The translations under genes and the position numbers were made by a program. Shown piece after piece: positions 9,001 through 34,227 of a DNA stretch of 64,000 nt. The stretch comes from Macrostomum lignano (taxonomy: Eukaryota): assembly GCA_002269645.1 (NCBI GenBank), contig NIVC01001911.1, positions 62,001 to 126,000 of the forward strand, written 5' to 3'. Positions within the stretch are counted from its first letter, which is position 1, and the number at the start of each line of letters is the position of its first letter. The notes under the pieces are model-generated. The model was not told the DNA's origin. It saw only the letters and a program-made list of their open reading frames with translations, and made no database searches.

Positions 9001-10025
9001 CTTCGATGCTTCAGTAACCTTCGATGCTTCAGTAACCTTCGATGCTTCAGTAACCTTCGATGCTTCAGTAACCTTCGATGCTTCAGTAACCTTCGATGCT
9101 TCAGTAACCTTCGATGCTTCAGTAACCCTCCCGATGCTTCAGTAACCCTCCCGATGCTTCAGTAACCCTCCCGATGCTTCAGTAACCCTCACGATGCTTC
9201 AGTAACTTTCCATGCTTTAGAAACCCTCCGATGCTTCAGTAACCGCCCCCCCCCCGATAGTTCATTAATCTTCTCAATGCATCAGTAGCCTCCACGATAC
9301 TTCAGTATCAATCCCAATAGCTACTTAAAGTAACCCTTGATTCAAAACTTCATTCTACAGGAGACGAGACACCTCTCAACAATCTTTGTTATGCATCTCT
9401 AATTTCGGACGTCACTCACGGCTTATCCTCGAACCGGAACTGTTGCACTTTGTAATGCAAGGCCTGCACATCCTGCTGGGTCTGCTTGAGACCGAATGCC
9501 AGCAGAAACGCCGGCCAATGCTGAGAGTCATGCTTGTCCTGCTGAGATGATGGACGACACGAGTGAGCTGAAATATTTTTAGTAGAAATATGAGTAATCA
9601 AGTTGAAATTCAGTTGTATCATTTATGAACAAAGCTTTATTAAAAATGGAAGAAACCATCGTACGACGATTTTGACGCCAAAGAACAAAACGTTCATTTG
9701 ACGGCGATATAATGATGGTCACCTAAATACCATATCGTTTCCCTGAAAACCATACCGGTCACCTGAAGCCCCTTATATCTAGCTCGTAAGACGTGAAAAG
9801 ATCGGCCTGCTCTCCTAATAAATCCTCAGTTGTCGCATCTGTTTTTGATGCGGAAAAGTGCCAAGCAGCAGAATCCATTGCGAGCTCACCCGACGGATGC
9901 ACCGACTTAAACACGCGATGTGAGCACTCCGTGTTGAGCAGATGATTCGACGGGTAGCTCTGACGGATCTCAACGGCGCACGGGCCGAGACGTTTCAAAC
10001 GAAGCTGGGATTGCGAATCCACCAT
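6064..10025 (-). CDS. NHL-repeat (beta-propeller) protein, about 412 aa, 5 exons
   Basis: Phase-consistent exons 9890-10025 (tentative), 9420-9567, 8213-8597, 7238-7582, 6064-6288. NHL motifs FCYPRGLSVASDGELAIADTENHRVQLF, LDSPLDVA..YAVADTGNSRVQIF and PTSVD..LLIADATNHTV. Confidence 0.85.
6467..7081. repeat. 40-bp intronic minisatellite
   Basis: GTAGCTTCAAGATGGGTGTCTGGGGTGCAACAGCACTCCC, about 15 copies. Confidence 0.95.
7612..7990. repeat. 41-bp intronic minisatellite
   Basis: CATGTTAGAGAGGAGTGTTGCTTGTGTCACCTGATAGA(GAG/CAA), about 8 copies. Confidence 0.93.
8690..9245. repeat. 18-bp intronic minisatellite
   Basis: (CTTCGATGCTTCAGTAAC)n; it produces the artefactual DASVTF ORF. Confidence 0.95.
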
Positions 10026-10347
10026 TGCGAACCTGACAGGGGGTGTTCAAACTGGCCTCTCTATCTGCTGCCGCGCAGCTAAAGAGAAATTTTCGAAGCA
10101 GCGGTCTCTCCTGTTAAAGCTTTAATAAAGAAAAGCTGCAGGTGTACAGTACAGACATTGTTGGCCCTGTTACCAAGCGCCAAATTCCAATAAGAAGCTT
10201 AAATTTTCTTTCTTTCTCTGCCTGCAAAACTGTGCAAGGCTGTTGGCCTTAAAAGCTGCATTGAGGGGTCGCATCTCCATCCACCCTCCTCGCTCGGTTT
10301 TTACGCGTGTGCATAAGAATTGTACGGCAATAACGTTGCCGCACTTC

Positions 10348-10406
10348 CTGTCTATCAGTCTATCAGTCTATCTATCTATCTGTCTATCTATCTATCTGTC
10401 TATCTG

Positions 10407-10437
<31 letters not shown>

Positions 10438-10446
10438 GTCTATCTG

Positions 10447-10525
<79 letters not shown>

Positions 10526-10537
10526 GTCTGTCTATCC

Positions 10538-10602
<65 letters not shown>

Positions 10603-10608
10603 ACTATC

Positions 10609-10639
<31 letters not shown>

Positions 10640-10650
10640 CTATCTATCTC
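10348..10650. repeat. (TCTA)n microsatellite
   Basis: Read directly. Confidence 0.97.
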
Positions 10651-10951
10651 AGATACACTTGCATTAAACGTAGAACAACTGCAATTAGTGCATCACTCGC
10701 TAGTGCAGCATAACACTTTTTCTGTCAGCATTTTATTTATGATTGTTTAGGTACTCATTAAAAAGCAAAAAGGCGATTAAGCGTACATTTAGATTAGGTC
10801 ACTCGTTCATGAAATAAAAAGTACTTCATCAAAGAAAACATTGTCATTAGTAAGTGAAACTCCCTTATTACCTACGCACACTATGATAGGCAAAAATGTT
10901 TAGTGGATCTATGATGGATTCCGTTTGCTTCTGCTTTCGACTTACTTTCCG

Positions 10952-12193
10952 TCAGCCCTGAGCAGCAGCCTCTTTTCGCTTCTTGTTAGCTTCCGTCATT
11001 CTATTCACGAGTTCTTGAGCGGGGACCTGCTTTTGCATCTTCGCCTTCGTAGCCGCCCGTTCTGCTTGAGACATGGCGGGCCGGTTCACGGGCCAGCTGA
11101 TGTCCATTTTCTTCTTTGGTGGCGCCGACTTAAACGGATTTTTGACGCTCTTCACTGTGGAAGGCGAGTGGGGCGGCTCCGCTGTGTCTATCTGCCCTTT
11201 TCCGCTGTGTCTATCTGCCCTATTCCACTGTGTCTATCTGCCCGATTCCACTGTGTCTATCTGCCCTATTCCACTGTGTCTATCTGCCCTATTCCACTGT
11301 GTCTATCTGCCCTATTCCACTGTGTCTATCTGCCCTATTCCACTGTGTCTATCTGCCCTATTCCACTGTGTCTATCTGCCCTATTCCACTGTGTCTATCT
11401 GCCTTATTATTCTGCTGTATCTATCTGCCCCTATTTTGCTGCGTCTATCTGCCCTATTCCACTGTGTCTATCTGCTCTATTCCACTGTGTCTATCTGCCC
11501 TATTCCACTGTGTCTATCTGCCCTATTCCACTGTGTCTATCTGCCCTATTCCACTGTGTCTATCTGCCCTATTCCACTGTGTCTATCTGCCCTATTCCAC
11601 TGTGTCTATCTGCCCTATTCCACTGTGTCTATCTGCCCTATTCCACTGTGTCTATCTGCCCTATTCCACTGTGTCTATCTGCCTTATTATTCTGCTGTAT
11701 CTATCTGCCCCTATTTTGCTGCGTCTATCTGCCCTATTCCACTGTGTCTATCTGCTCTATTCCACTGTGTCTATCTGCCCTATTCCACTGTGTCTATCTG
11801 CCCTATTCCACTGTGTCTATCTGCCCTATTCCACTGTGTCTATCTGCCCTATTCCACTGTGTCTATCTGCCCTATTCCACTGTGTCTATCTGCCCTATTC
11901 CACTGTGTCTATCTGCCCTATTCCACTGTGTCTATCTGCCATATTCCACTGTGTCTATCTGCCTTATTATTCTGCTGTATCTATCTGCCCCTATTTTGCT
12001 GCGTCTATCTGCCCTATTTTACAGTGTGTATCTACTCTAATCCTTAATCTTATTTCGAGCCATATCAGCTAAAACACAAATTAGCAGATTTACCTTTTGC
12101 CATAATAGGCCTGGGGCATCCTTGAACTTCAGTAGCTATCACCAGAGCCATTATCAGCAGGCACAGAGTTGTGAAAAGTTGGCAGCTTGACAT
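10952..12193 (-). CDS. Secreted cationic Pro/Lys-rich peptide, paralog A (109 aa, 2 exons)
   Basis: Exon 1 12094-12193 (MSSCQLFTTLCLLIMALVIATEVQGCPRPIMAK, donor G|GTAAAT). Exon 2 10952-11181 (acceptor CACAG|CG; AEPPHSPSTVKSVKNPFKSAPPKKKMDISWPVNRPAMSQAERAATKAKMQKQVPAQELVNRMTEANKKRKEAAAQG*). Phases match, and the structure recurs in three paralogs. Confidence 0.85.
11182..12030. repeat. 23-bp satellite array 1 (CCACTGTGTCTATCTGCCCTATT)n in the intron of paralog A
   Basis: About 37 units. The variant GCCTTATTATTCTGCTG recurs at 11401, 11681 and 11961, giving a 280-bp higher-order period. Confidence 0.95.
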
Positions 12194-13542
12194 TTTCGTA
12201 TTAATATTTCTAGATTTGTTTTGATTTTCGGCTCGTGAACTAATCAGTTGTAGAGGTGGCAGTTCTTCAACTGAAGTTACAACAGCTTAAAGACGCGTTG
12301 TTACGAGTGGCTATGCGGCACCAGCGTAGTGAAATTGCTGCCGATAAAATTTCTGGCAGCAAGCATAGCTTGCGTTATTTTTTGCCACAGACAAGTTGAC
12401 AAGTAAGATATGGTCAACCAACTGCGATAGAATCTCGCAAAAGTGCAAGTTTTTATTATTTCACTTATTACAGACAATTTAGAATTTATCTAGTGCATAC
12501 TTGATATGCAAATGGTGTTGAATTTTTTTAAAAGTTTGAAAGGTTAAAAGCATATCTTTTCGTTATTGTTTGAGATGTCAATGCTGATGCTAACTAAGAT
12601 GTTCTTTTTCTGGAATTGATTGATTTCTAGACTATTGCTTAAAGTACTGTTTTTGATCAACGAAGTAAGCATTTTAAGGCTCACGGTGAGAATCTCTATG
12701 ATGTAAGAAGTTTAATTTGGTGTAGATTAATTTTGCGCTGTGGCGGCCAGACTGTACGCGACCGGCAGCACCAGTGCAGCCGCACTGGAAACCCCCAACC
12801 TCTTGTCTAGCTGAGGTGGGGTGGGTGCGCACCAAGCTAGCCGGCTCGCTAAGCCGGGGAGTTGGCGTAGCCAATCACGCCACGCCACCTTTTCGCACCT
12901 CCCTAGGCCCCTCAATATCGCTCTGTTTGTGTAAACATAAATATACGCACAAAGCAGCGCAAAATCTTCGCTGCCATTCCATCTATTGAACTAAAAAGGC
13001 CTTCCGCCTCAGCGCTAAAATTTCGTTCCGACAAATGCCGAAACGAAAAGGTAAAAGTGCCACAAGTAAGATTCGAGCTGCAAAGCATAAGCGGTGCGAT
13101 GAGTCTGAGAGTGAACGCCAGCTTCGAGCTGACCAGTTCGAAGGTACGCCTCCACATATGGACTATATTAGCGTTCGACGTGCTATTGCAGAGCATATTT
13201 CTCCCCTACTATGTATACTCGTAGTACTCGTAGCCGACATACTACGAGTATAAATGTTGTGCTGGAATTGCAGTTTTTAATGGTCCGATCGGGTTTAGCT
13301 TGGTAGGGTGGTAAACCAGTGGGGCGTGGCTCTTGTGCTTTGATGCGGGGTGGTGGGGCCGTGCTTTGGTCCCGTGCCATCGGTTTGGGTGCCTTTATTT
13401 AGCGCCTCTGGCCCGCTAAGTACGTGTCGATTTTTCTCTTCTAAGTCTCCAAGATTTTCTAAGTTTTTAGTCCTTTAAAATAAAGTAAATACTCGTAAAT
13501 ACGAGTTTACGTAAATACAGTACGCTCGTACGCTCGTATTAC

Positions 13543-13612
13543 TGCGGCCAGACTCGAACTCGCGCCTCTCGTGCTAAATGCCTTGAATTCGTCTCACTGG
13601 TTTAACTATGAA
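13543..13612 (-). mobile_element. Possible tRNA-derived SINE head
   Basis: B-box-like GAGTTCGAGTCT with a degenerate A-box-like TAGTTAAACCAGTGAG upstream; no complete cloverleaf. Confidence 0.3.
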
Positions 13613-13619
13613 TCAGATT

Positions 13620-14190
13620 GTTCCACTGTTTCTATTCCACTGGGTCTATCTGCCCTATTCCACTGTGTCTATCTGCCCTATTCCACTGTGTCTATCTGCC
13701 CTATTTCACTGTGTCTATCTGCCCTATTCCAGTGTGTCTATCTGCCCTATTCCGCTGTGTCTACCTGCCCTATTCCGCTGTGTCTATCTGCCCTATTCCG
13801 CTGTGTCTACCTGCTCTATTTCACTGTGTCTACCTGCCCTATTCCGCTGTGTCTATCTGCCCTATTCCGCTGTGCTATCTGACCTATTCTGCTGTCTATC
13901 TGCCCTATTCCACTGTGTCTATCTGCCCTATTTCACTGTGTCTATCTGCCCTATTCCAGTGTGTCTATCTGCCCTATTCCGCTGTGTCTACCTGCCCTAT
14001 TCCGCTGTGTCTATCTGCCCTATTCCGCTGTGTCTACCTGCTCTATTTCACTGTGTCTACCTGCCCTATTCCGCTGTGTCTATCTGCCCTATTCCGCTGT
14101 GCTATCTGACCTATTCTGCTGTCTATCTGCTCTATTCCACTGTGTTTATCTGCCCTATTTTGCTGTCTATCGGCCCTATTCTACTGTGTC
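13620..14190. repeat. 23-bp satellite array 2 (same family, intergenic)
   Basis: Same unit and orientation as array 1. Confidence 0.95.
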
Positions 14191-14503
14191 TTTCAGGTTG
14201 ACATTTTCGCGTAAAATTGTTTATTAAAATTACATTCTAACTCGCGTACTAATAGTTTGTATAAGCGAATTTTTTTCTACACCATAAAGTAGAAAAAAGT
14301 TTTTACGAGTTTAACCACAGACATTTGATAATTAAATAATACCAGAGAATATTGAGTATGCATAGAATGCCAACGTAGCTTTAAAAAGTGAAGCCAATTT
14401 TCGCGTTCCGCCGAAAGTTTGGCTTTGGACCATAGACTAAAAATATATTCTAAAGCGTTATTTATTCTCATATAGACCAAACAGCGGCAGCACTTGTAGG
14501 ATT

Positions 14504-14927
14504 ATATAGCTTTTGTCATGCTATCTCAGCCTAGGGACATCCAAACTCAGCCAGCCCCATTCCGCAATGCGTTTTTTGGCTCGAGCTAGTCGAGTTTTAC
14601 CATAGACATGCTTCTTAAGGCCATGCTATCTCAGCCTGGGACATGCAATCTCAGCCAATATAGATTTCAATTGCAAACAGATCTCAATGCTATCATTTCT
14701 GTAACGTGACATGAAATGGCAACAAACAGCAGTGAATGAACGCAGCAAGAAAAGTCAGTAAGAATCTGAAAAGTGGCTGAGATTGCATGTCCCAGGCTGA
14801 GATAGCATGGCCTTAAGAAGCATGTCTATGGTAAAACTTGACTGGCTTACGTAAAAAATCGCACTGTTGAGATGGGCTGGCTGAGTTTGGATGTCTCTAG
14901 GCTGAGATAGCATGACAAATACTATAT
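14504..14927. mobile_element. MITE-like element with about 150-bp terminal inverted repeats
   Basis: TTTGTCATGCTATCTCAGCCTAG..GCAATCTCAGCCA (14512-14658) is mirrored by TGGCTGAGATTGC..GCTGAGATAGCATGACAAA (about 14774-14919); no ORF. Confidence 0.85.
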
Positions 14928-14999
14928 TTATTACAAGTATATTTTTAGCTCAAAACAATTTAGGCGCGTCGGGTGTCCTGAAGACTGGCATCATTAAGG

Positions 15000-16600
15000 C
15001 ATGGTGCGCAGAGAATCCGAGACTTCCAGACAATCAACCCCCGTTTGCTCTTGACACCTTCGCAAACTGAAACCCAGCAGAATGTTTCTTTCAAACAGCA
15101 ACTTTACTGCACCTGTTGCACTAGTTTCAAACTTTGGTATAGCCACGACAGCGCACCTTGTTCCCATTCCGAAAAAGCCAGGTACGATCAGGATCATTTA
15201 ACACAGGGGAATATACACTCGTAGCTGATATTGTGCGCCCCGAAGCTCTTCAACAAGATCTAGCGTGGGGCCAAGGAGCCTCTGGCGGCTGTCTACCTGC
15301 AGCGACGACAACAGGCTGCTGTTGACGAAGCCATCCAGGCCGTCACCGCTGCTGGACCCGACGCCAAACGGCGCGCGGCCTAGTCCGTCATCAACGCTCT
15401 GACCGGGCGGAAGTGGAGCATCCCGCTCAACCCGGCTGGCGATAATCCGGATCAGTGGAAGAAATAACGTCGCCCCCGCTGCCAAACGATCTGAGGCTGC
15501 CGCAGGGGACGGCATTTTGCTGACAGAGGGTTTCAATGTAGCACAAGTCAGCACAGCCGACGTTGTGATGCTCGCTCAAAAGACTTCGGGTGGCAAAGCG
15601 CTGGGTATTCCGAAGAAACCGTATACCACGCGCGGCACAGTGGTGCAGATCCTGGCTCTTCGGCGAGTCATCGAGGAAGCGCGGACCCCCAGTCCAGCCT
15701 GATTACTCTCTTATTGACTTCAGGAAGGTCGTGAGGGCCGTGCTCCCAATGGTGCTTACAATTGTGATGTTCAACGTGCCAGAGCAGCTGATTTCCGCCG
15801 TCATGGCGCTGTACCATGGCACGAGAGCTGCTATGCGGACACCGGACGGCCTGTCGGATTTCTTTGAGACATCCTCTGGGGTGCTTCAGGGAGATACGCT
15901 TGAGCCGTTCCTGTTCGTCCTGCCGCTTGACTGGGTGCTGCGAACCGCCCTAGCTCCCTTCTACCGACGACGGCTTCCTGCTGCAACGACGCGTGGGTCG
16001 TCGCCAACCGGAGAGGCGGCTCGGCGTGCTTGACTACGTCGACGATTTTACCCTACTGTCCTCGACCGTCGAGGGCGCCCAGCGCCAGCTGGACTGGCTT
16101 GTGAGCGTTGCAGTGAGTGTCGGACTGGTAATCAACACGCGGAAGACCGTCGTGCTCTGCGTGCCGGGCGACATCGAGGCTGCAATTTTCTGCCGAGACG
16201 CTGACAGACAGGGGACGAGGCTTCCGCGCTGTCAGCAGTTCGTCTACATCGGCGGTCTGATGCCTGACGTTCGCGAGGCCTGCTAGGCGCTACAAGTGCG
16301 GCTACGAGCGAGTCACCAATGCGGCACTCTACCGCCGCACCGGCCTGTCCCGTCCTAGCGAACTGTTGCGCACCGGGCAACTCCATCTGGCAGGCCACAT
16401 CCAAGCTGAGTCGTACTGCTCACAACCGGTGCCGAAGGTGCTGTTGCTCAAGCTGCAGGCACCCTACCGGCAGGGCAGGTGCGCACTCGGCGTTTCGTCG
16501 ACTGCCTGCTGACTGATATGATGCCGGCGGTGCGGCCTACATTCGCGCCCAGGCCTTGAAACGAGCCCTGTGACGCAGGCTCACTCTTGACTGGCTGACA
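15000..16600 (+). mobile_element. Degenerate RTE-clade non-LTR retrotransposon reverse transcriptase
   Basis: QILALRRVIEE, IDFRK, GVLQGDTLEPFLFVL.LDWVLR, LDYVDD and GLVINTRKT..FVYIGG motifs, interrupted by frameshifts and stops. Outer limits approximate. Confidence 0.88.
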
Positions 16601-16681
16601 ATGCATTTTATCGTTGTTTTTGCTATTGTTGTTGTTGTTGTTGTTGTTGTTTTTGTATTTTTATATTTGTTTAAACGTATA

Positions 16682-17492
16682 CACCATTTTACCTCCATTG
16701 GCTGCATTGGTGAACAAAGTCTTGTTCAAAAGAAACAAGCAAAACTTCAATTCAAACAAAGTCCCTTTCTATTGAAACAGAAAAACTTCAATTCAGACTG
16801 TCTGCGGCCAAAATTGTCCCCGAGTGACGCGCATGCACAGATTTGAAATTCAAAAGAAACAAAGTCACATTCTATTTCGACAGAGATTTTTGCACATACA
16901 TTTAGATACGAGTACATTTTTAGTACATTAATCTAATTTTTTGTTTTTCCTGTACTGAAAAACTGTACAATCGTTGCGCAATAAGAAACGATATGAATGC
17001 TGAAGATCAGATTAAAGAAGACGATGAATTGCTGGAAGAAGGTGGAATCGGTGAATAGCACGGGAATCAGTCGATTGCGACCTATCGGCGAGACATTCTG
17101 TACAGCATGGTGGACAGAACCATTGGCTGCATCTCTGTGGACAAATGCATTGAGTGGTTCAACCATGTGTTTACATGCTTCCCTCGCTGCCTTGGTGGAC
17201 AGGCATTGATGGTTAGGTGTCCCAAGTTGGCCAATTGACACTGTCTTGTTCCTGTTTTTCATTTTACTCTTATGTTCGTCGATATGCTGTGTTTTATCCC
17301 TTTGTTGAAATAGAATACGACTTTGTTTCTTTTGAATTTCAAATCTGCGCATGCGCGTCATTCGGAGATAATTTTGGCCACAGACAGTCTGAATTGAAGT
17401 TCTTCTCTTCTGAAGAATAGAAAGGGACTTCGTTTGAATTGAAGTTCTGCTTGTTTCTTTTGAATTTGTTCAAAATAGGAGGTAAAATGGTG
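16682..17492 (+). mobile_element. Non-autonomous IS630/Tc1-mariner-type DNA transposon
   Basis: About 200-bp imperfect TIRs (CACCATTTTACCTCC... / ...GGAGGTAAAATGGTG) and TA on both sides. Internal remnant ISVDKCIEWFNHVFTCFPRCL resembles DDE_3 transposase C-termini. Confidence 0.8.
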
Positions 17493-17891
17493 TAATACAT
17501 CTGTTAGTAAAAGTAAATAAATAACATGCATACATATAGATATACATGTATATGTAGAGTAGAGCGTTGCAGACAATACATCTTAGGCATTCAGTACGAG
17601 TACACGTAACTCGTACGGCTCGTAGATGGATACATGCTTCATTACGGCAATAAAGCTATTGTCTAACTTGCAATTTTATTTATTAAAGTTTCGCTACTCT
17701 CATTAAAAACAAAATTGGTGACTGAAAATACATAAAAAAGCTACTCATCCTCGTTCAAAAAATAAACAGCGTGTTAGTAGGCAGTAAAACTTACATTGAC
17801 TGCTCAAAAACTACGAGTATAATCAGTAAAAAGTAGAGCTCTTTGACCACCACATGAGCTTATTGTCGAAAACAGTAAACTTGTTTTCGCT

Positions 17892-19023
17892 TTATCGGCG
17901 GCCGGCCTGCTTTCTTTTAAAATAAGCCGCTTCCCGCTGGCTTTTCATATTCTTCAAATCCTTATTGATGGAATCTATTGGGGCCTTTTTTGACGTGGTA
18001 GGCCGGTTCACGGGCCAGCTGATGTCCAACTTCTTTTTTTGTGGCGGTGGCGCCGATTTAAACGGATTTTTGACGCTCTTCACTGCGGAAGGAGAGTGCG
18101 GCGGCTCCGCTGTGTCTACCTGTCCTATTCCGCTGTGTCTACCTGGCCTATTCCGCTGTGTCTACCTGTCCTATTCCGCTGTGTCTACCTGTCCTATTCC
18201 GCTGTGTCTACCTGTCCTATTCCGCTGTGTCTACCTGTCCTATTCCGCTGTGTCTACCTGGCCTATTCCGCTGTGTCTACCTGCCCTATTCCGCTGTATC
18301 TATCTACTCATTCCGCTGTGTCTACCTGCCCTATTCCGCTGTGTCTACCTGCCCTATTCCGCTGTGTCTACCTGCCCTATTCCGCTGTATCTATCTACTC
18401 ATTCCGCTGTGTCTACCTGCCCTATTCCGCTGTGTCAATCTGCCCTATTCCGCTGTGTCTACCTGCCCTATTCCGCTGTGTCTACCTGCCCTATTCCGCT
18501 GTGTCTACCTGCCCTATTCCGCTGTGTCTACCTGCCCTATTCCGCTGTATCTATCTACCCATTCCGCTGTGTCTACCTGCCCTATTCCGCTGTATCTATC
18601 TACCCATTCCGCTGTGTCTACCTGTCCTATTCCGCTGTATCTATCTGCCCATTCCGCTGTGTCTACCTGTCCTATTCCGCTGTATCTATCTGCCCATTCC
18701 GCTGTGTCTACCTGTCCTATTCCGCTGTATCTATCTACCCTATTCCGCTGTATCTATCTACCCTATTCCGCTGTGTCTACCTGCCCTATTCCGCTGTGTC
18801 TATCTACCCTACTCCGCTGTCTACCTGTCCTATTCCGCTGTGTCCATTTACCCTATCCCACTGTGTCTGTTCCTAAATCGTATTTCGAGCCCTATCAGCT
18901 AAAACACAAATAAGCATATTTACCTTTTGCCATAATAGGCCTGGGGCATCCTTGAACTTCAGTAGCTAACATCAGAGCCATTACCAGCACGCATAGAGTT
19001 GTGAGAAGTTGGCAGCTAGACAT
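17892..19023 (-). CDS. Secreted cationic Pro/Lys-rich peptide, paralog B (105 aa, 2 exons)
   Basis: Exon 1 18924-19023 (MSSCQLLTTLCVLVMALMLATEVQGCPRPIMAK). Exon 2 17892-18109 (AEPPHSPSAVKSVKNPFKSAPPPQKKKLDISWPVNRPTTSKKAPIDSINKDLKNMKSQREAAYFKRKQAGRR*). Phase-1 GT-AG intron. Confidence 0.87.
18110..18870. repeat. 23-bp satellite array 3 in the intron of paralog B
   Basis: Dominant variant CCGCTGTGTCTACCTG(C/T)CCTATT. Confidence 0.95.
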
Positions 19024-19895
19024 TTTCGCATTAAATTTTCTTTTTATATCCTTGGTTCGCGTACTACTAAGTTGCAGGGGTGGCAATTATCTAATTGAAG
19101 TTATAACAGCTCAAAGACGCGTTGTTACGAGTTGCTACCTGGCTTCAGCATAGTGAAATTGCTACCGAAAAAGCCGGCAACATGCATAACTTGCGTAATT
19201 TTTTGCCATAGACAAGTAAGATTTGATCAATCAAGTGCGATAGAATCCGGCAAAAGTGCAGATTCTTATTATTTCCCTATTTACTTTCGCTGATTACAGG
19301 AAATTTAGATTTGGAACTTCTAAAGACCTTTACAGCTGTGTCCCAAAGTAGACTGACGTCGCAAGCAGAATTTAATGTAACTTGCATCACTGAATATAGA
19401 TATTTTAGTATATTAGAAGCTCTATGGCTTTTTTGTTAATTATTGTAGTTTTATACAAGAAAGAAGTCATGCATAGAATGAGTATGAGATGAATGTACAT
19501 AAGTCTACGTACATTCAAATTTAATCAACACATCTCATCCCAGATAGTTAACCAACGAATGGACAGAAGCCCTCGAAGTCACACTCGCCTCCTACAATCT
19601 GACAGGTGCGCAACTGAAAGTCTGACATTTTCAAGCCGCTCTGTTTGGACACCAGCAATAACGATACTGGATCTCCTTGCGCGACACCGCAGCACCAGCT
19701 GCCCGTGATCGCCAGGGGTCAGCGGAATGGCAGCGACGCCTCCCGTTGCACTCGGATGCTTGGAGCCGCCTACAGCTGAGTCAAAAGAGGCGACAGCAGT
19801 GTAGCCACCCATGGAAGCGACAATTTTAGCTTGAGAGGCAGCCAAGGAGTTAGGTCAATCTTCCAGGTGATTATGTGATCATCTCCAGAGGTCAC

Positions 19896-20745
19896 ATTCC
19901 GCTGTGTCTATCTGCCCTATTCCACTGTGTCTATCTGCCCTATTCCACTGTGTCTATCTGCCCTATTCCACTGTGTCTATCTGCCCTATTCCACTGTATC
20001 TATCTGCCCTATTCCACTGTGTCTATCTGCCCCATTCCGCTGTGTCTATCTGCCCTATTCCGCTGTGTCTATCTGCCCTATTCCGCTGTGTCTATCTGCC
20101 CTATTCCACTGTGTCTATCTGCCCTATTCCACTGTGTCTATCTGCCCTATTCCACTGTGTCTATCTGCCCTATTCCACTGTGTCTATCTGCCCCATTCCG
20201 CTGTGTCTATCTGCCCCATTCCGCTGTGTCTATCTGCCCTATTCCACTGTGTCTATCTGCCATATTCCACTGTGTCTATCTGCCATATTCCACTGTGTCT
20301 ATCTGCCCTATTCCGCTGTGTCTATCTGCCCTATTCCACTGTGTCTATCTGCCCTATTCCACTGTGTCTATCTGCCCTATTCCACTGTCTATCTGCCCTA
20401 TTCCACTGTGTCTATCTGCTCTATTCCACTGTGTCTATCTGCCCTATTCCGCTGTGTCTATCTGCCCTATTCCACTGTGTCTATCTGCCCTATTCCACTG
20501 TCTATCTGCCCTATTCCACTGTGTCTATCTGCCCTATTCCACTGTCTATCTGCCCTATTCCACTGTGTCTATCTGCCCTATTCCACTGTGTCTATCTGCC
20601 CTATTCCGCTGTGTCTATCTGCCCTATTCCGCTGTGTCTATCTGCCCTATTCCGCTGTGTCTATCTGCCCTATTCCGCTGTGTCTATCTGCCCTATTCCG
20701 CTGTGTCTATCTGCCCCATTCCACTTTGTCTATCGACTATATCTG
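19896..20745. repeat. 23-bp satellite array 4 (intergenic)
   Basis: Same family and orientation as arrays 1-3. Confidence 0.95.
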
Positions 20746-21019
20746 CCCTGTTCCATACGAACGTAGGCTAGTTGACCTTGACGCCAAAATTCTCTATGAA
20801 TGGACGATGATTCTGTATTTACCTGTTAGAGATTTCTACTCGCTGATGGTATTCAAATGCAACTTTTCAATGCCTAAAATCTATGATAGTGACGTCGGCA
20901 CTGTACAGGAACTGCATGACTATTTCTCTGACTTCTCTCAGTAAAAGCAATGTCGAAAGAGTATGATCTATATTGTACCATTGTCACTGCAGACAAGACA
21001 TCTTAGATAATTAGTGTGT

Positions 21020-21870
21020 AAACTGCCAGCCGACAACTGCCAGCCGACAACTGCCAGCCGACAACTGCCAGCCGACAATTGCCAGCCGAGAAAACTGCCA
21101 GCCGACAACTGCCAGTCGACAATTGCCAGCCGAGAAAACTGCCAGCCGGAAAACTGCCAGCCGACAACTGCCAGTCGACAATTGCCAGCCGAGAAAACTG
21201 CCAGCCGGAAAACTGCCAGCCGACAACTGCCAGCCGAGAAATCTGCCAGCCGACAACAGTTGAAGGAGAAAGCATTCAAATTTTGTATTTTAGGTAGCCT
21301 TTGCTCTTTCTTTGAAAGCTTTATTTAAGTAAAGTAATTTAATAGACTTATCTAGGATTGCGTCAGATAGCAATCGCAATCGCAAATTAAATAATAAAGT
21401 AAATAAACTTTCAATACAGAAATATTTACAATAGGCATTACAGAATGCCTTCTCCTTCACATATATACTTCTAATGGAAATCTGAAAAATTTAGGGAAGA
21501 GAAGGGCGACATTTAAGGCTACCCCACAAGCCTTTTGCTAGCCAAACAGTTTCGTGCTTTTTACTTAGCTAATAAGTAGGCTACAGTAGATTCAATTATC
21601 TAGAACTTGTCCGCTGGCAGTTGTCGACTGGCAGTTGTCGGCTGGCAGTTTTCCGGCTGGCAGTTTTCTCGGCTGGCAATTGTCGACTGGCAATTGTCGG
21701 CTGGCAGTTGTCGGCTGGCAGTTTTCCGGCTGGCAGTTTTCTCGGCTGGCAATTGTCGGCTGGCAGTTGTCGGCTGGCAGTTTTCCGGCTGGCAGTTTTC
21801 TCGGCTGGCAATTGTCGGCTGGCAGTTGTCGGCTGGCAGTTGTCGGCTGGCAGTTTTCCGGCTGGCAGTT
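21020..21870. repeat. Pair of oppositely oriented 14-16-bp arrays (AACTGCCAGCCGAC) around a unique spacer of about 350 bp
   Basis: Forward array 21020-21257; reverse-complement array 21613-21870. Confidence 0.85.
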
Positions 21871-22456
21871 GGGGTGGACCCCCCATGTCCAGCAGAGTGG
21901 ACGACAGCGCACCTAGGTCCCAGTTCGAAGAATCCCGGCACGACCAAGATCGAAGAACACAGGGGCAAATACGTATTCAAATTAAACCTTACGATACCTA
22001 CAATTTATGAGTGATGTTTACACTACTGCATCACTATTACTTTGAGCTCTTTCGCTAAAATCAATGTCAAAACGCGTTTTCGAATATTTGTTGGATGCAT
22101 TACTTTACGCTTGTATACAAGCTATAGAGTACACGACTAGAGCGTTGCAGACAATATTGTACATGTTAGGCATTCAGTACGAGTACATGCAACTCGTAGA
22201 TGGATACATGCTTCATTATGGCAAAAAGCTATTTGCAACTTGCAATTTTATTTATTAAAGTTTCGCTACTCTCGTTAAAAAGGGTGACTGAAAAAAATGT
22301 ACAAAAAAGCTATACTCGTACTCCTTCAAAAAAATAAACAGCGTGCTAGTAGTCAATAAAGAACTCACATTGACTGATCAAAAACGATGACCAGTAAAAA
22401 GTAGAGCTCTTTGACACCACATGAGCTTGTTGTCCAATGCAGTAAACTTTTTCGCT

Positions 22457-22870
22457 TCATAGCTTGCCGGCCTGCTTTCTTTTAAAATAAGCCGCTTCCC
22501 GTGCTTTTTTCATTTTCTTCAAATCCTTATTGATGGACTTCATTGAGGCCATTTTTGACTTGACAGGCCGGTTCACGGGCCAGCTGATGTCCAGCTTCTT
22601 TCTTGGAGGAGGTGGCGGCGATTTAAACGGATTTCTTATGTTCTTCACTGCGGAAGAAAGGAGAGGCTCCGCTGTGACGAACTGCTCTATTCCGCCGTGT
22701 CTATCTGTCCTATTATTCCTACATCGTACGTAGAGCCCATGTCAACTAGAACACAAATTAGGATATTTACCTCTTCTTAAAATAGGCCTAGGGCATCCTT
22801 GAACTTCATTAGCTAACATCAGAGCCGTTACCAGCAAGCACAGACTGGTGAAAAGTTGACTGCTCGACAT
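22457..22870 (-). CDS. Secreted cationic Pro/Lys-rich peptide, paralog C (104 aa, 2 exons, 99-bp intron)
   Basis: Exon 1 22771-22870 (MSSSQLFTSLCLLVTALMLANEVQGCPRPILRR). Exon 2 22457-22671 (AEPLLSSAVKNIRNPFKSPPPPPRKKLDISWPVNRPVKSKMASMKSINKDLKKMKKAREAAYFKRKQAGKL*). Confidence 0.87.
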
Positions 22871-24570
22871 TTTCGAAATTAATATTTTTATGCTTTTTTT
22901 ACTCTTACTAAAATGATGTAGAGGTAGCAATTATCTACTCGAATTAGAAATTAGCTCAAAGCTTAGGTTTATTTTGGCCATGGACGATTGCAAAGATATA
23001 AAGTCAAATAACTGACTAAGATCTGGCGAAAGTGCAATATTTCTTCAAGTTGACTTACATGTACTTTACGCAGATGTCTATGGCCTAGACACCAACTGAG
23101 AGTCGGCATTACCTAAACCCTACATGTAGTCACATGCCAGATTTCGTTGGTCATTATTAATTTTATGCTGTCGCAGCCAGCAAAATGTCTTACTTGAGTA
23201 AATGCTTGGCATTCCTGTGTCTACTGGTTGTGATTACAAATCTTATTTCGTTGCCCATAGCAACCGAAGGATGCAGTAGCGGTAAGAAGAGATGGAATCT
23301 TGTTTCTGAACTTGGGAAATCTGTATAATGAGGGGACTACTCAGGTATAGAAGCGTCCGAAACTAAACTTTCTTGGAAAATTTAGATTCTTAGAAAAGTT
23401 AGAAAATTAAAACTCTTATAGCTGAGTGTGTAGCAATAAAGTGTAACAGAATGATAAAATAGATTTATAAAACCAATGACTCGAGCTTTAAACATGAATT
23501 TTTTATGATTTTTAGGTATGAGACATGTACGTAGGATATAAAAGCAGGATCTGCTCTGCCTGCCTATAAAAACTATACAAGTTTCAAACTTTAACAACTA
23601 GCTGGATGGTGAATTCACTCAGCGCATTATAGCATACGCTCGTACAAGCTACTTTCAGTTCAGTAGAAGTTGAAATACAAGTACAAGCATTGTAATTGCA
23701 TTCCTTAAAGGCTCATTTATTGCTTCTCTGTCCCATCCCATGCAGGCCATCCGTAGCTAAACCCTTAGGCTCAGGTCTAATTTTTATGTACATGTACATT
23801 TTAATGTACACGTCAATGTACATTTCAGGTGCTTTGGCTTACAATGAACATTATGACTGAACCTAATTGTATTTTACTAAACACAAGTGTCTAAGCGGCC
23901 CAAGTATTTTATCATAAAAATAGTTTATGTTAGCTTGTAGTTCACTAGAGTTTAACCGTCATTCACTTTGTTTATCAGAATTCAGTACATTTTATAGTAT
24001 ACCTTTCTAATGTATAAACACTTGCTGAAACTACTGTTGTTATGCAACTTTTCTTTGTACAAATAAAGTAATTTTTAAATTAAAATAACTTAAAGCGATT
24101 GGATACGTTTGTTAACGTTGTAAACTTTTCCGAGTACAAATTCAAGTACATTGTTATTAAAGGTTCTACTGTTGTTGTAACGGCTGAAATTTAGGAAATG
24201 TGAATTTGATCGTGGCATGACATTGCCTAGCATGCATTTTATTTAATCAACAAAAAAACTTGACTGAGTTTGAGTACCTTGACCTAACATGATGTTTGAG
24301 TAGTCGCTGAGTTAAGAGAGGCTGAAAGTTTAACATGAAAGCCCCAACGAGCTGTAACAGCTGTAACAAACTGTGCCATCGAAGTTATAGAGCAGATCGT
24401 AGTCTACAACATGCCCCTTCGATAACAAGTCTTTGGAACTAAAATTTGAGATCTTTCAAAGGGCACTAATAAGAACTCGTCAAAGGGCAGAGGGTTGATA
24501 TAATACACAGGGAATTAAGTCTTTAACTGACAGTACTTGAGTGCCTTCAGGAATCAGGAAAGCTATAAGT

Positions 24571-25370
24571 GGGGAGGAAATTTCACTTCGCCGAAAAGCA
24601 GATTGTGAGTCTTTCACTTGGCCGAAACTTCACATTGCCGAAAAATCATTTTAGCAGCGTCCTGACTATGGTCGAAAGAGGATGTGAACTTAAGCCTCTA
24701 AAATGGAACCGCAAGCAGTGACGATTTCTCTGCATCAGTTTCTTTATTTTGACCTAAGTGTTACTGCTACCAAAGTGGGAGCACGATATGGTCACTCAGT
24801 TTTTTCGACATTTCTGACTTCATTTGGGGGTGAACTCTGATTGCTTATTATTTTCATTGCCATTTTCTGTCTCAATCGGATGGACTTTTAAGTTGTAAAG
24901 TTTGTATGTTTTTGTGGCTCCTTTGAAAGCACGCAGATTTGCCTAGATTCCTATTCGTAGAATATGCATGGCTCTAAGATTCACTTTAATGTTACCATGT
25001 TAGTTTCGGCCTAGTGAAGTTTCGGCCTAGTGAAGTTTCGGCCTAGTGAAGTTTCGGCCTAGTGAAGTTTCGGCCTAGTGAAGTTTCGGCCTTGTGAAGT
25101 TTCGGCCTAGTGAAGTTTCGGCCTTGTGAAGTTTCGGCCTTGTGAAGTTTCGGCCTAGTGAAGTTTCGGCCTAGTGAAGTTTCGGCCTAGTGAAGTTTCG
25201 GCCTAGTGAAGTTTCGGCCTAGTGAAGTTTCGGCCTTGTGAAGTTTCGGCCTAGTGAAGTTTCGGCCTAGTGAAGTTTCGGCCTAGTGAAAGAGGCTGCT
25301 AAAATTATTTTTCGGCAATGTGAAGCAAGATGCTTTCGGCGAAGTGAAATTTCGGCCTAGTGAAACCCCC
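24571..25370. mobile_element. Non-autonomous TIR element with a subterminal 16-bp tandem array
   Basis: GAAATTTCACTTCGCCGAAA (24577) is inverted at 25334-25353. A second inverted block CTTCACATTGCCGAAAAAT.ATTTTAGCAGC is present, and (TTTCGGCCTAGTGAAG)n spans 25014-25290. Confidence 0.75.
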
Positions 25371-25371
25371 C

Positions 25372-26560
25372 GTCTGCGCCGCGCCCGTCACGTTGGCTTG
25401 CCAATAATAAATGAGGATTCGAGCTGCCTAATGTGCCATGTCTTTAGCCAGGAGGTCAGCTCATCGCTGATGAATTCAGGGCCTTAATCGGACTCGAGAA
25501 ATTCTGGAGCACCAATGCGTGTGACGACTGTGTGAAGTGCGGTGATAACAGAAGTAAAAGTTCGGTTTCTACATGGAAAAGCTTCAATCCAGCCGGAGTG
25601 TGCATCAACAACAATAATGAGGATGTTGCCAGATCAATCCATTTGAAGCTTCTGAAATGGTGCGTCACGCTCTCGTGCAAGCCTTGGTCGGAGGACATTG
25701 CATGCGGTGCAACATAGTGCTCGACGTCAGATCGTACGCCGGGCCACGAACATGTACTTGTAGGCTGCTATGTACCCATTATGAGTTGTGAGTTTGAAGT
25801 GAATGGGCATTTCGCGGCCCTTAGTCGAATTAGAATAAAGACGCATTTTTTGTTGCAAAGAAGTCCATTTTTGATGGTGAGCTTATTAGTACTGCTCGGC
25901 CTGAGATCATGACTTCCATGCAGTAACCAGACAACCCTTTTTGCATGACGCGTTAAACAAATGGTTCTGCGTCGATCTCCGCTACACAATGCGATTTTGC
26001 GGGATTACAGGCGATTCAAAGTTTACAAAGTTGATACGAGCTAGCACTCTCTACGCTTCCTGAATCCATGGCTTGGACCAACCCGTGTGATGGCGCATCA
26101 GAATAATTTGACTCTCTGGCGCATACTGAATGTCGTAATAGTCGAAATGCTATGGCTTAGCGATATATTTGTCGGGATTCCCAGAGATCGGCCAAATGGA
26201 CGCATCAACGGCTGGTGATCAATATGACGATGGTGAACTTTCTACCCAGGATGTAGGGCTTGAGACGATGGGATGCCCAGAAGTCCGAGTTGAGTTCATC
26301 CAGTTCATGCTTGCCACTTGCCTGAGTAGATAGCATCCTCACATGTGAAGAAATTTGGGAGTACATGTACTTCTATGACCCTGGCCTCAGACTAGAAACA
26401 ACAGAACCGTCATTGGATTACCAACAATGAGAAGGATGCTTTAATCAAGTTTCGCCAAATAACGCAGCATCGGCAGAGTGATGGCAGTGATTTTCTTGCG
26501 ACAAAGTGACATTCTCTGTAGCCTGTTCTGCTCAGTCGGGAAGCCACCTCGGAGGTACAT
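25372..26560 (-). mobile_element. Degenerate Ty3/Gypsy pol fragment (RNase H and integrase)
   Basis: LKPYILGRKFTIV-DHQPL, WPGVRSDVEHYV and LIIVVDAHSGWIEAFPC..RIGAPEFLESD*GPEFISDEL, across frameshifts and stops. Confidence 0.85.
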
Positions 26561-27152
26561 GTGCACAGAGGAGCAACAACAAAAGTTAGAGGCCAATGAG
26601 CTGCTACCTTCGTAGTTGTATTCCCATAAAAATCAGTGAGTTGTTGTTCCTAGAGGTATGGAATTAGAAAATTTCTATCAGCGTAATAAACCCTAGGACA
26701 ACTCAAGTAACGACGAGAGGTGTTTGTTAATTCTGGGAAAATGTACGTCTAATTTTACACACAAATTATACTCTACTGTATTAGAACGTTTCAGCATTAT
26801 AATTTCAGCCAAATTCCCCCAGGGCGACAGAAGTTGGAGGCTGATCTATATTAAGAGCTTATATCATCGGAAAGCATAACTTCGATGGGTTTTTACCACA
26901 AGCAAAAACAGGTTAAGAAAAACTTATGTATGTATACATGTTCATGTATTTAAGTAATATAGTAACATTATTTTACATCTTTCATCATTACTTAGATAAG
27001 ACGCGCTTTGTGGCTACATACATGTACGCTCGTATATTTCATTTGTTAAAAACAAACACATTTACATACAAAACCAATTTTTTAGCTTCTCACACTGATC
27101 GTGTACCTGCTGAAGTTGTTTTTTTATCGCTCATTACGAGCGTACTAACCTA

Positions 27153-27796
27153 TTAATCAAAGTCAAGAATATCCGTTACAACCTTTCCAGTGAATTTAGG
27201 CCCCTTTTTCATAAACTTCCGTTTCGCTTTTTTCTTAACCTTTTTCTGCGCGTAGCCCGCCACACTTGCCGCGATCTTCTGATTGACGTCAGCGTCTGGA
27301 AGCCTCCTACCGTCTGGTACAGCTAGTGGCGGGTTTTTGAACGGATTCCCCTTACTGAGAACTCCTGTGTGGGGGCGAGTGATCGAGCTAGCTGTATTGT
27401 ACGCATGACGTAAATCCGACACCCAACCCCAGCTCTGACAACCACCCCAACTTCGACACCCACCCCAACTCCGACACCCAACCCAACTTCGACACCCACC
27501 CCAACTCCGACACCCACCTCAACTCCGACACCCACCCCAACTCCGATACCCACCCCAACTCCGACACCAACCCCAACTCCGGCAGCCATCCCAACTTTGA
27601 CAAATATATGTACACGATGTATCCTATATACATCTAAATTATATCCCCTCACCTTGAACATAGCACATGTACTTCTCAAATCAGAAAAAGCAGACTATTT
27701 ACGCTTTGCAATCGGAGGAGCGCAGCCATAACCAGCGTCTAGCACCAGGCTCATTAATAGTAGACACAGGCCGATAGCAGTATGATTGAGTAGCAT
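27153..27796 (-). CDS. Secreted cationic Pro/Lys-rich peptide, divergent paralog D (110 aa, 2 exons)
   Basis: Exon 1 27703-27796 ([31 protein letters not shown], donor C|GTAAAT). Exon 2 27153-27391 (acceptor TACAG|CT; [79 protein letters not shown]). Same phase-1 intron and G|C site as A-C. Confidence 0.75.
27416..27598. repeat. 18-bp minisatellite in the intron of paralog D
   Basis: (CCCCAACTCCGACACCCA)n, about 10 copies. Confidence 0.9.
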
Positions 27797-29650
27797 TTGG
27801 AGGCCGGGGGCACAAGGATTTCGCAGGCGCGCGGTCTTTAAATCTAGTTGTTGGAACCGGTTTCGAAAAGTTTGTAGTAGACTTCTACGTTGTATACAAG
27901 TACATAGTATATCTGTCAGGGAATAGAAATCGACGTTATTTTAAGCCAAAGTTTTTAATTAGACGGAGAAAGTCCCCCATTCCGGCCATTATTGACCACA
28001 GACAAGGTTAGACCAAGATTATTTAATGTCAAACGATGCACTTAACTAGGGTACTTCCAAAATTATTATAATGATTTCCTCACAAACACGCAGTTGTTAA
28101 AAAAACTACATGTACCTTCTCAGATAAAAACATTAAACAAGAGCTAGCTAACTCAATTTTTTTTCAGTTTTGAAAGTGAAAATTCAAGCAAACGTATATT
28201 ATATACAATTTTTTTAATTTGCAGGAATCGATCAGTGTTAATAAATAATTTGCATGGATGCATGATATGTATCTGTTTTTGGTGCATGGTTTCAAACTCC
28301 TTATCCTTCCGAAATCTAAATTTTTAACAATTTTTAGAAAAAATTTGGGGATATTGATGGGTTTCGGCCTCTCAGCCCCCTCGTGGGGAAGCCTTCGGGC
28401 CTCAGGTCTCAGAAATAAATCAATTAGAGTCCTGGCCCCCCACTCCTGTCAGATGGTCAGCCCCATGGTAGCTTGATCGTGTGGCGAGCAGTCTAGGTCC
28501 TATAGCTAAGAGAGGGACAGCGAGAGACGAGCAGGGAGAATTTTGAAAGTAGAAATTAGCTAATCCGCAGATCAACTAACTTGCTGCCACCAGCCCGTGC
28601 GTCCTGGCTCACCACACCGGGACTCTCGAAATCGGGCTTCCGACTAGAAGGGGCTTTGCACTTACCTGCCAACTAGTGTCTTTTTGCTGTCAATCTCGAA
28701 GTCATAGCCGATGATAGGGACACTGCTGGGACTCGATCGCATTGGCCATGCAGGTACAGAGGCGACTTGTGCAGGGGATTCTTGCAGTGGCGAGACTGGG
28801 GTAGCTATACATGTAATATTACATTGCTAAATACGAAGAATTGTACTTTTGGCCTTCAACGCGCCAACTAGCCTCTCATAGCGCTGATGATAGACTAACT
28901 CGAACTTCGGAGACCGCATGATTCATTACCCGAGCCGCTTGGCAAACCTAGAGTGCACAAAGTACATCTCTGGCGCCGATTTTGCACTATTGGCAATTTT
29001 GCTCACTGATTTGATAGATTGATCGACTGAGAACTGCCTTGCCATTGGTCCACTGTGACCGGCGCCTACTAACTACTCATCTGAGCCATCGGCGAACAAA
29101 GAAATAAAACCGATAACAATATCTGTCAGATTTAACCTTCTCACTGAATCACTTCACACTTCAGATTGAATTGGAGTTTCGGACTTGAAGACTCGGACTC
29201 GGACTCGGAATTGGAGTTTTAGCAGTATTATTGAATGGTTTCCGCCTCAGTAACAGCACTACTGAACAAAATGAGCAAAAGTGTGCGCCTAATCCAGCTA
29301 CTGAAACAGGAGACAGGTAAGGAATCCCCCAATCAAGTCTAGGCAGCCTCTCACCCAACCAATCAGAAGCTCAACAGCCGGAGACCAGGTAATCCACAGT
29401 GACCGAATCGGCTTAGTGCTTTGCAGTTGTAGACCCGGGATGATGCTGATGTCACAATCTTCGCAGATAGCTAGCAGGTGATTCTCTTAACTTTGATGTT
29501 CACTGCTGATGACCGGGGGAATTCGTCCTTGACGATGATGGGGGGAGTCGCAATCCGGGGATCAAGAAACGACGGTCGGTCCAGAGAGAGAGCAAGTTCC
29601 TGTTGGCCGGTCTCCAGAAAGGGTTAGTCCGAGCGGGCCAAAAACACCGG

Positions 29651-31811: not shown

Positions 31812-34227
<2,416 letters not shown>

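Follow-up and report, generated by a model that had tools for sequence, protein, structure and literature searches.

Small, strongly basic secreted peptides have been described in several systems with which the gene cluster reported here, four genes (A-D) in a 64-kb stretch of DNA from the free-living flatworm Macrostomum lignano, can be compared. Antimicrobial peptides (AMPs) of the cecropin, magainin, and LL-37 type carry a signal peptide, their mature chain is small, strongly cationic, and predicted to form a helix, and they are encoded in tandem, fast-evolving clusters. Proline-rich AMPs, such as apidaecin, oncocin, Bac7, and PR-39, are characterized by a length of ~15-45 amino acids (aa), a high proline content, and repeated PRP or PxP units. 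Flatworm prohormones are ~100-aa preproproteins that contain a leader, many di- or tribasic sites, and short conserved blocks beside basic residues. In M. lignano itself, the prostate-limited putative seminal fluid proteins Mlig-pro1-76 have been reported, with a signal peptide predicted for 38 of the 65 translatable candidates (Weber et al. 2018, PMC5977470), as has the secreted and extremely basic adhesion protein Mlig-ap1, whose KR-rich regions alone exceed 3,600 aa and which also contains lectin and von Willebrand D domains (Wunderer et al. 2019, PMC6410801). In the authors' model, attachment and release depend on charge interaction with polyanions, and an added cationic peptide altered detachment in that study (PMC6410801). 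The stretch that we analysed (hereafter, the window, whose positions are used throughout) is part of the published M. lignano assembly Mlig_3_7, GCA_002269645.1, and the record of contig NIVC01001911.1 is 100% identical to window positions 12457-32870. We interpret genes A-D as a lineage-restricted tandem family of secreted polycations, a reading to which we assign a probability of roughly 0.55.

The products of A-D share with AMPs of the cecropin, magainin, and LL-37 type all of the features listed above, the signal peptide being a predicted one. However, the tails of A-C are not amphipathic, and there is neither sequence similarity nor an anionic pro-piece. The positive charge of amphipathic helical AMPs is present in A-D, but their high hydrophobic moment is not found in A-C. 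A-C also resemble the proline-rich AMPs in being cationic, proline-containing, and predicted to be secreted, a likeness in general character rather than in matched sequence, and they display a PRP triplet at the mature N-terminus together with PPP(PP) runs. In contrast to that class, the mature chains of A-D are 71-77 aa long, which is two to four times longer, contain 8-10 prolines (11-14%), have a single PRP in A-C, and end in a predicted helical tail; they fall outside the class as defined above.

All four genes are encoded on the minus strand and consist of two exons. Their models and the AATAAA poly(A) signals found behind three of them are as follows.

12193-12094, minus strand: exon 1 of gene A (100 aa), followed by the intron (12093-11155) and the coding part of exon 2 (11154-10952, including the stop codon)
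19023-18924, minus strand: exon 1 of gene B (96 aa), followed by the intron (18923-18083) and exon 2 (18082-17892)
22870-22771, minus strand: exon 1 of gene C (96 aa), followed by the intron (22770-22648) and exon 2 (22647-22457)
27796-27703, minus strand: exon 1 of gene D (101 aa; divergent and unannotated), followed by the intron (27702-27365) and exon 2 (27364-27153)
10732-10737, minus strand: AATAAA poly(A) signal of gene A, 215 nucleotides (nt) past the stop codon
17675-17684, minus strand: overlapping AATAAA signals of gene B, ~208 nt past the stop codon
22247-22256, minus strand: overlapping AATAAA signals of gene C, ~201 nt past the stop codon

The introns of A, B, C, and D are 939, 841, 123, and 338 nt long, respectively, and all are in phase 1, with a GTAAAT donor and with a pyrimidine-rich tract and a CAG acceptor at the other end. 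AATAAA is located 200-215 nt downstream of the stop codon in each of A, B, and C, and neither AATAAA nor ATTAAA is present in the 500 nt that follow the stop codon of D. An earlier note on this DNA had proposed four minus-strand two-exon genes with start codons at 12193, 19023, 22870, and 27796 and with phase-1 introns that share a GTAAAT donor. All four models were recovered at these positions, and phase and donor hold for every one of them. The remark in the same note that the whole genes are invisible in the open reading frame (ORF) track also proved correct, because the prokaryote-style ORF list contains the exons only as separate short ORFs of 63 aa, amid long spurious ORFs derived from an intronic repeat.

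Exon 1 encodes a hydrophobic leader of 24-25 residues that ends in V-Q-G↓C in A-C or in G-Y-G↓C in D (the arrow marks the putative cleavage site), and exon 2 encodes a stretch rich in Pro and in Lys/Arg and, after it, a basic tail. The 15-residue core of the leader has a mean Kyte-Doolittle hydrophobicity of 2.3-2.8, and the residues at positions -3/-1 before the putative cleavage site are V/G in A-C and G/G in D, all of which are small and uncharged. By manual rule, the hydrophobic core (about 7-15 residues), the polar c-region, and the small, uncharged residues at -3/-1 of a signal peptide are all present, and we infer that the leader acts as a cleavable signal peptide with a predicted cut at G↓C. 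If this cleavage is assumed, the mature chains of A, B, C, and D are 75, 71, 71, and 77 aa long (about 8 kDa, with an isoelectric point (pI) of 10.3-11.6) and contain 18-23 Lys + Arg, 3-6 Asp + Glu, and 8-10 Pro residues. Their computed net charges are +13, +16, +20, and +13, respectively; a previous manual count of +12, +15, +19, and +13 was exact for D and one too low for each of A, B, and C. Each mature chain contains a single Cys, which is at position 1 in all four. The leader with LC(L/V)L and the terminal G↓C, the NPFK(S/N).PP motif in A-D, and the KK(L/M)DISWPVNRP motif in A-C only were all found as previously described, and the conserved N-terminal module of A-C can be written as CPRPI..NPFK..PP..KK(L/M)DISWPVNRP. 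These features support the earlier proposal that the genes form a tandem family whose products are small, very basic, and headed by a hydrophobic leader at the N-terminus.

The same leader could instead be retained. The genes would then encode small single-pass membrane proteins in which the uncleaved N-terminal helix serves as an anchor and the polybasic chain is cytosolic. AlphaFold2, which was run on A and B only with a tiny family alignment and gave models of moderate confidence, predicts a 21-residue helix at residues 3-23; the flank on its N-terminal side is uncharged, and the flank after it is net positive. By the positive-inside rule, such a charge pattern favours an N-out/C-in orientation. 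However, the strictly hydrophobic core comprises only ~15 residues, which is typical of signal peptides, and next to it lies a polar c-region in which Val occupies position -3 and Gly position -1. Moreover, the G↓C junction has been kept even in the distant gene D, as expected of a cleavage site. We regard a membrane anchor as highly unlikely.

A, B, and C are, by their sequences, unambiguous paralogues. In tblastn comparisons among the three, the exon 1 peptides gave expect values (E) of 1e-13 to 1e-19 and the exon 2 peptides gave values of 1e-11 to 1e-13, and the DNA identity is 77-87% over exon 1, the ~250 bp that precede it, and the initial ~130 nt of exon 2. Between B and C, 83% DNA identity continues for ~550 nt into the 3' flank, and A and B are identical over >60 nt spanning the exon junction. 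Gene D exhibits no DNA similarity to A-C. At the protein level, BLASTP identified 12 identities in 21 residues across the exon junction (GC.PPI..RV....NPFK.PP; pairwise E 3e-6), and the A-C profile scored D at 26.7 bits, which exceeds all of 5000 shuffles that preserved the composition of the leader, middle, and tail segments (best, 18.4). Without the leader, the score fell to 5.2 bits (rank 165 of 5001), which is not significant. The likeness of D to A-C comes chiefly from the leader and from the region of the exon junction. In an ungapped alignment, as read from the sequences, the intron of D cuts the codon before the one that is cut in A-C, with the phase unchanged. D adjoins A-C in the same orientation and is similar in size and charge. 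Taken with the profile and BLASTP similarities, this arrangement makes D a probable distant paralogue of A-C.

Homologue searches returned only M. lignano sequences. No Pfam family was detected at E ≤ 10 for any of the four proteins, and the best match in a profile search of the PDB was a ribosomal protein at E 0.37, with nothing meaningful found. For B, a word-indexed/HMMER search of 5.8 billion proteins retrieved no proteins other than those of M. lignano, and for D it retrieved none; 1.84 billion representatives, searched exhaustively with an HMMER profile, yielded only two M. lignano clusters. The statement in the earlier note that the peptides belong to no known family is thus borne out in Pfam and the PDB, with no homologue outside M. 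lignano in either of the large protein searches. Because other annotated flatworm proteomes are included in such collections, yet gave no match, the family appears to be restricted to Macrostomum or to a narrower group.

The genome of the M. lignano DV1 line carries large recent duplications (PMC5730564), and the same cluster is present on contigs NIVC01000353 and NIVC01001978, with about 92-100% identity per 200 bp. With B as the query, three proteins were retrieved, each named 'hypothetical protein BOX15_Mlig...', one of which is 100% identical to B and another to C. Gene C has already been annotated at exactly 22870-22457 (PAA62065.1, Mlig009388.g1, on NIVC01001911.1), and a protein identical to B has been annotated with its own exon 2 on NIVC01000353.1 (PAA84953.1, Mlig020625.g1). 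PAA62066.1 (Mlig027967.g1; 100 aa) starts at the ATG of B and joins exon 1 of B to exon 2 of A. This chimera (Mlig027967.g1/g2; window 19023-10952, minus strand) skips exon 2 of B and exon 1 of A in a join that spans 8 kb, and the corresponding join on NIVC01001978 (extract 10001-24164) spans 14 kb. Given the identity of A and B over >60 nt across the junction, the chimera may be an artefact of transcript assembly or may represent real splicing between paralogues; the latter, if it occurs, might mix leaders and tails. In an exact look-up in the protein collection, neither A nor D as predicted was present, nor was the duplicate-contig version of D. The description of the family as unrecognised was therefore too strong, because C, B, and part of A have been deposited as hypothetical proteins (PAA62065.1, PAA84953.1, and PAA62066.1, respectively).

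The GenBank annotation of Mlig_3_7 is based solely on a genome-guided transcriptome, in which RNA-seq data were assembled by StringTie/TACO, de novo transcripts were mapped, and ORFs were called by TransDecoder (PMC5730564). Because this annotation is purely transcript-built, there is indirect transcript evidence for the splice junctions of C and of B and for the acceptor of A. Spliced transcripts, on which the gene models had been made to depend, are in this indirect manner attested for C and B (identical coding sequences) and for the exon 2 acceptor of A, and D has no model. From this indirect, transcript-derived evidence, A-C are probably expressed. No match for the locus tags, accessions, or peptide motifs of the family was found in the full-text literature or in the supplements of PMC5816591, PMC5730564, PMC8662610, PMC6410801, and PMC5977470. 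The supplements of PMC7336406 also gave no match for the family identifiers; the orthogroup table among them, whose identifiers have the appropriate format, was covered only in part, and the absence of a match in that table is therefore uninformative.

The copies on the duplicate contigs are in different states. Gene B yields the same protein on each of the three contigs, with three nucleotide differences on NIVC01000353, all of which are synonymous, and gene A is intact on NIVC01001978 and encodes the same protein. The copy of A on NIVC01000353 contains five to seven substitutions per exon and a Gln-to-stop change. This contig (extract 10001-18283) also contains a second, leaderless orphan A-type exon 2, 6.8 kb downstream of the A-type copy, and the annotated protein PAA84952.1 (94 aa, NIVC01000353) has been modelled in three pieces: the model exits the first exon 2 at an internal CAG↓GT and continues into the second copy in a different frame, which yields an Arg-rich tail. 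The copy of C on NIVC01000353 has an S3N substitution and a 1-nt insertion in an A-run that shifts the frame of the last ~15 residues; the insertion may be an error of long-read (PacBio) sequencing. The most extensive difference concerns gene D:

27347-28266, minus strand: 920-bp segment absent from both duplicate contigs, comprising the 5' flank, exon 1, the intron, and the first 18 nt of exon 2 of gene D

On the contigs that do not contain this segment, an upstream ATG is in frame with the rest of exon 2 of D and produces a leaderless ORF, MHQKQIHPFKNPP... We considered and rejected an insertion of the segment in NIVC01001911.1; because the segment encodes exactly the residues that can be aligned with A-C (GC.PPI..R/V....N of NPFK), its absence indicates a deletion in both duplicates. 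Of the four intact genes claimed in the earlier note, all four models are thus present, but D lacks a transcript-based model on all three contigs, has lost its leader exon on two of them, and is doubtful as a working gene. As a separate observation, the spacer from B to A is ~12.9 kb long on NIVC01001978 (extract 11100-22900) versus 6.8 kb in the window (17890-12200), indicating a large insertion or deletion in one copy.

To what extent the peptides are under selection can be judged from the paralogues. From the mature N-terminus to WPVNRP, A and B differ by two nonsynonymous and five synonymous changes, corresponding to a ratio of nonsynonymous to synonymous rates (dN/dS) of 0.09. For the pair B and C, the ratio is 0.83 overall and reaches 2.6 in the tail (14.5 versus 1.5 changes, too few for significance). 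The tail of A cannot be aligned to those of B and C at the DNA level, and the end of its 3' untranslated region is still 69-79% identical to theirs. At the protein level, the tails of A and C exhibit a weak in-frame similarity (24% over 25 aa, E 0.05). This weak in-frame likeness and the conserved end of the 3' untranslated region suggest that the tail of A reflects extreme divergence rather than a frameshifted or foreign replacement. The low dN/dS of the N-terminal module and the fast change of the tail together indicate that the head is constrained, whereas the tail is changing very fast. We rejected the comparison with the duplicate contigs as a decisive test of coding constraint, because nearby non-coding stretches are often equally similar.

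These data also bear on the explanation that the genes have little or no function, being young, lineage-specific genes that are drifting to loss at a low level of transcription and without a selected peptide. A dN/dS of about 0.83 between B and C fits this explanation, as do a stop codon in A, a frameshift in C, and a deleted leader exon in D on the duplicate contigs, relic copies within the cluster, and the lack of an annotated transcript for D. Against such drift, the B protein is identical on three contigs, on which the gene differs only by synonymous changes; the dN/dS is 0.09 in the N-terminal module of A and B; the copies of A on two contigs are intact and identical; even D retains a leader, the Cys, NPFK, and its overall charge; and the frameshift in C, lying in an A-run of a PacBio-based assembly, may be a sequencing error. 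We consider an absence of function quite improbable.

Several points weigh against our interpretation of A-D as a lineage-restricted family of secreted polycations. The comparison of B and C looks near-neutral overall. Divergence varies from place to place along the duplicate contigs (0-8% per 200 bp), and the near-identity of the B and C exons between contigs is therefore no clear evidence of constraint. The leader core spans 15-17 residues, and the flank that follows it is more positive than the N-terminus, so that an uncleaved N-out/C-in anchor is conceivable. The GenBank models at the cluster include odd chimeras, which makes the transcript support for A-C indirect. The absence of homologues is bounded by database content, in which other species of Macrostomum are represented by few proteins or none. 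Finally, D has neither a transcript-derived model nor a canonical poly(A) signal.

The AlphaFold2 models place the leader helix of A and B before a Pro-rich middle that is disordered (predicted local distance difference test (pLDDT) score, 53-65) and a helical tail (residues 69-95 in B and residues 63-74 and 79-99 in A; pLDDT, 77-84), and thus back the earlier suggestion that the tail is probably helical. The best 18-residue hydrophobic moments of the tails are 0.30 in A, 0.34 in B, and 0.41 in C, which are equalled or exceeded by 36-78% of shuffled tails, and the mean hydrophobicity of these tails is -0.34 to -0.56, which is very hydrophilic. The helical tails of A-C are not amphipathic. Only the tail of D attains a moment of 0.60 (p 0.036), in a stretch that includes Gly-Pro. 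The non-amphipathic tails of A-C argue against a pore-forming attack on membranes of the cecropin or magainin type, and a membrane-active helical antimicrobial mechanism, as implied in the earlier note, is not backed by moments that are no higher than those of shuffled tails. They do not argue against defence by other routes or against roles in reproductive or gland secretion.

A different possible fate of the chains is processing. As prohormones or neuropeptide precursors, they would be cut at di- or tribasic sites into signalling peptides, for example V(K/L)..NPFK..PP and (L/M)DISWPVNRP, which would act on receptors. Each product has the size of a ~100-aa precursor with a leader, and the only conserved blocks of A-C are short stretches flanked by basic residues (AK/RR ahead of VK..NPFK..PP and KKK/RKK directly ahead of (L/M)DISWPVNRP), as in flatworm prohormones; D contains KR, then 17 residues, and then G-RR, a classical signal for amidation and cleavage, and B ends in G-RR and A in G. 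In contrast to the known precursors, however, A-D contain no repeated peptide copies and no consistent amidation glycine: no conserved basic site follows DISWPVNRP, and the internal basic sites of A-C are not preceded by Gly. Because basic residues account for at least a quarter of the mature chain, dibasic pairs are expected by chance. The protein searches also revealed no similarity to the described flatworm neuropeptide families. Processing into signalling peptides is very unlikely in our estimate.

Returning to secreted polycations as the preferred reading, we propose the following mode of action. Removal of the leader would release an ~8-kDa peptide of pI 10.3-11.6 that starts with the invariant Cys. 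The mature peptide would act outside the cell as a soluble polycation that binds electrostatically to polyanions, for which microbial envelopes, glycans of mucus or the glycocalyx, sperm or egg surfaces, and acidic granule contents are candidates; insertion of an amphipathic helix into membranes would not be part of its action. The conserved N-terminal module would provide specific recognition, and the fast-changing tail would be a generic carrier of charge.

As to the biological role, mucosal or epidermal host defence is possible and is the assignment that we tentatively place first. A reproductive gland secretion, belonging to the seminal fluid or to the cement gland, is a weaker candidate. 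Mlig-pro1-76 come from the same species as A-D, and the transcripts concerned carry MLRNA110815 identifiers. The supplements of PMC5977470 contain neither the locus tags of the family nor 'BOX15', and no link between the two sets emerged. A function as a packaging or adhesion partner for polyanionic secretions appears unlikely. Mlig-ap1 and A-D are both very basic and come from the same species, but A-D are only 8 kDa in size, and the two are likened by description and not by sequence. DISWPVNRP, NPFKS, and the locus tags are absent from the supplements of PMC6410801, including the mass-spectrometry tables of footprints and tails, in which Lys-rich chains would be poorly recovered by trypsin. 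Such poor recovery of very Lys-rich chains was remarked upon for Mlig-ap1 (PMC6410801). Some other role, or none, is just as unlikely as packaging, and a prohormone role is less likely still.

A more far-reaching proposal, which we consider improbable, is that A-D represent a new, Macrostomum-specific class of non-amphipathic polycation effectors. In this class, leader cleavage would expose an invariant N-terminal Cys that is functionally modified, either by formation of a disulfide dimer or by N-acylation similar to that of Hedgehog and Spitz; the module (CPRPI..NPFK..DISWPVNRP) would recognise a specific target, and the rapidly replaced basic helix would supply charge. Such effectors could serve as mucosal defence peptides or as seminal peptides that manipulate the mating partner.

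If the products of the family are abundant secretions of glands or the epidermis, they would rank among the earliest candidate effector peptides from a free-living flatworm model amenable to transgenesis and RNA interference, and flatworm mucosal immunity or seminal-fluid-mediated sexual conflict would become more tractable. The family is a new sequence family within a familiar kind, namely, orphan secreted cationic peptides in tandem arrays. Uncharacterised families of 'hypothetical proteins' are common in flatworm genomes, and a specialist would find the present one reasonable rather than surprising. The cluster is also a compact example of the birth and death of an orphan family in a recently duplicated genome, in which the head is conserved, the tail has been replaced, minisatellites occupy introns, relics remain, and duplicates decay in different ways.

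The introns of A-C are related by a 23-bp minisatellite, GGCAGATAGACACAGTGGAATAG (minus strand), which has 105 matches versus 0 expected and, within the 64-kb window, is confined to the cluster. Its arrays and the relic associated with one of them are as follows.

11178-12043, minus strand: ~37 units of the 23-bp minisatellite, filling the intron of A
18106-18868, minus strand: 23-bp minisatellite, filling the intron of B
22687-22709, minus strand: single remaining unit in the intron of C
14259-14192, minus strand: relic of the 5' flank of the family and the first 13 nt of exon 1, with an ATG at 14204
13632-14191, minus strand: orphan 23-bp array that runs directly on from the 5' relic
19894-20734, minus strand: second orphan 23-bp array, between C and B

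All of the arrays are in one orientation, and array length differs among the duplicate contigs. Because the 5' flank and the exon 1 start of the family stand directly before an orphan array, the region 13632-14259 is recognisable as a dead fifth copy of the A/B/C type, with no exon 2 beyond the array. No exon relic was detected alongside the second orphan array (19894-20734), which is presumed to be the remnant of another lost copy. The relic copy, the orphan arrays, and the damaged A, C, and D on the duplicate contigs indicate that the cluster evolves by birth and death. The intron of D contains a minisatellite of its own (27415-27596), an 18-bp unit, TCCGACACCCACCCCAAC, in ~10 copies, which is unrelated to the 23-bp repeat.

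According to the annotation of NIVC01001911.1 and the duplicate contigs, the cluster is bounded by two conserved genes:

about 6000-10000, minus strand: NHL-repeat protein (412 aa), downstream of gene A
31815-32870 onward, plus strand: short-chain dehydrogenase (adh_short, 294 aa), upstream of gene D

An Rfam scan of the whole window detected no RNA family, and when ten other large ORFs of the window were compared with Pfam, nothing rose above sub-threshold noise, which fell on repeat-derived ORFs. The spacers contain further repeats. Between C and the second orphan array, arrays of a 14-bp unit, AACTGCCAGCCGAC, and of its reverse complement (21020-21257 and 21607-21871) form a facing inverted repeat of ~240 bp per arm, which could be hairpin-forming or derived from a transposon. 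Between the 3' end of gene A and the NHL-repeat gene, there are a (TCTA)n microsatellite of ~75 units (10351-10649) and an 18-bp tandem repeat (9000-9307).

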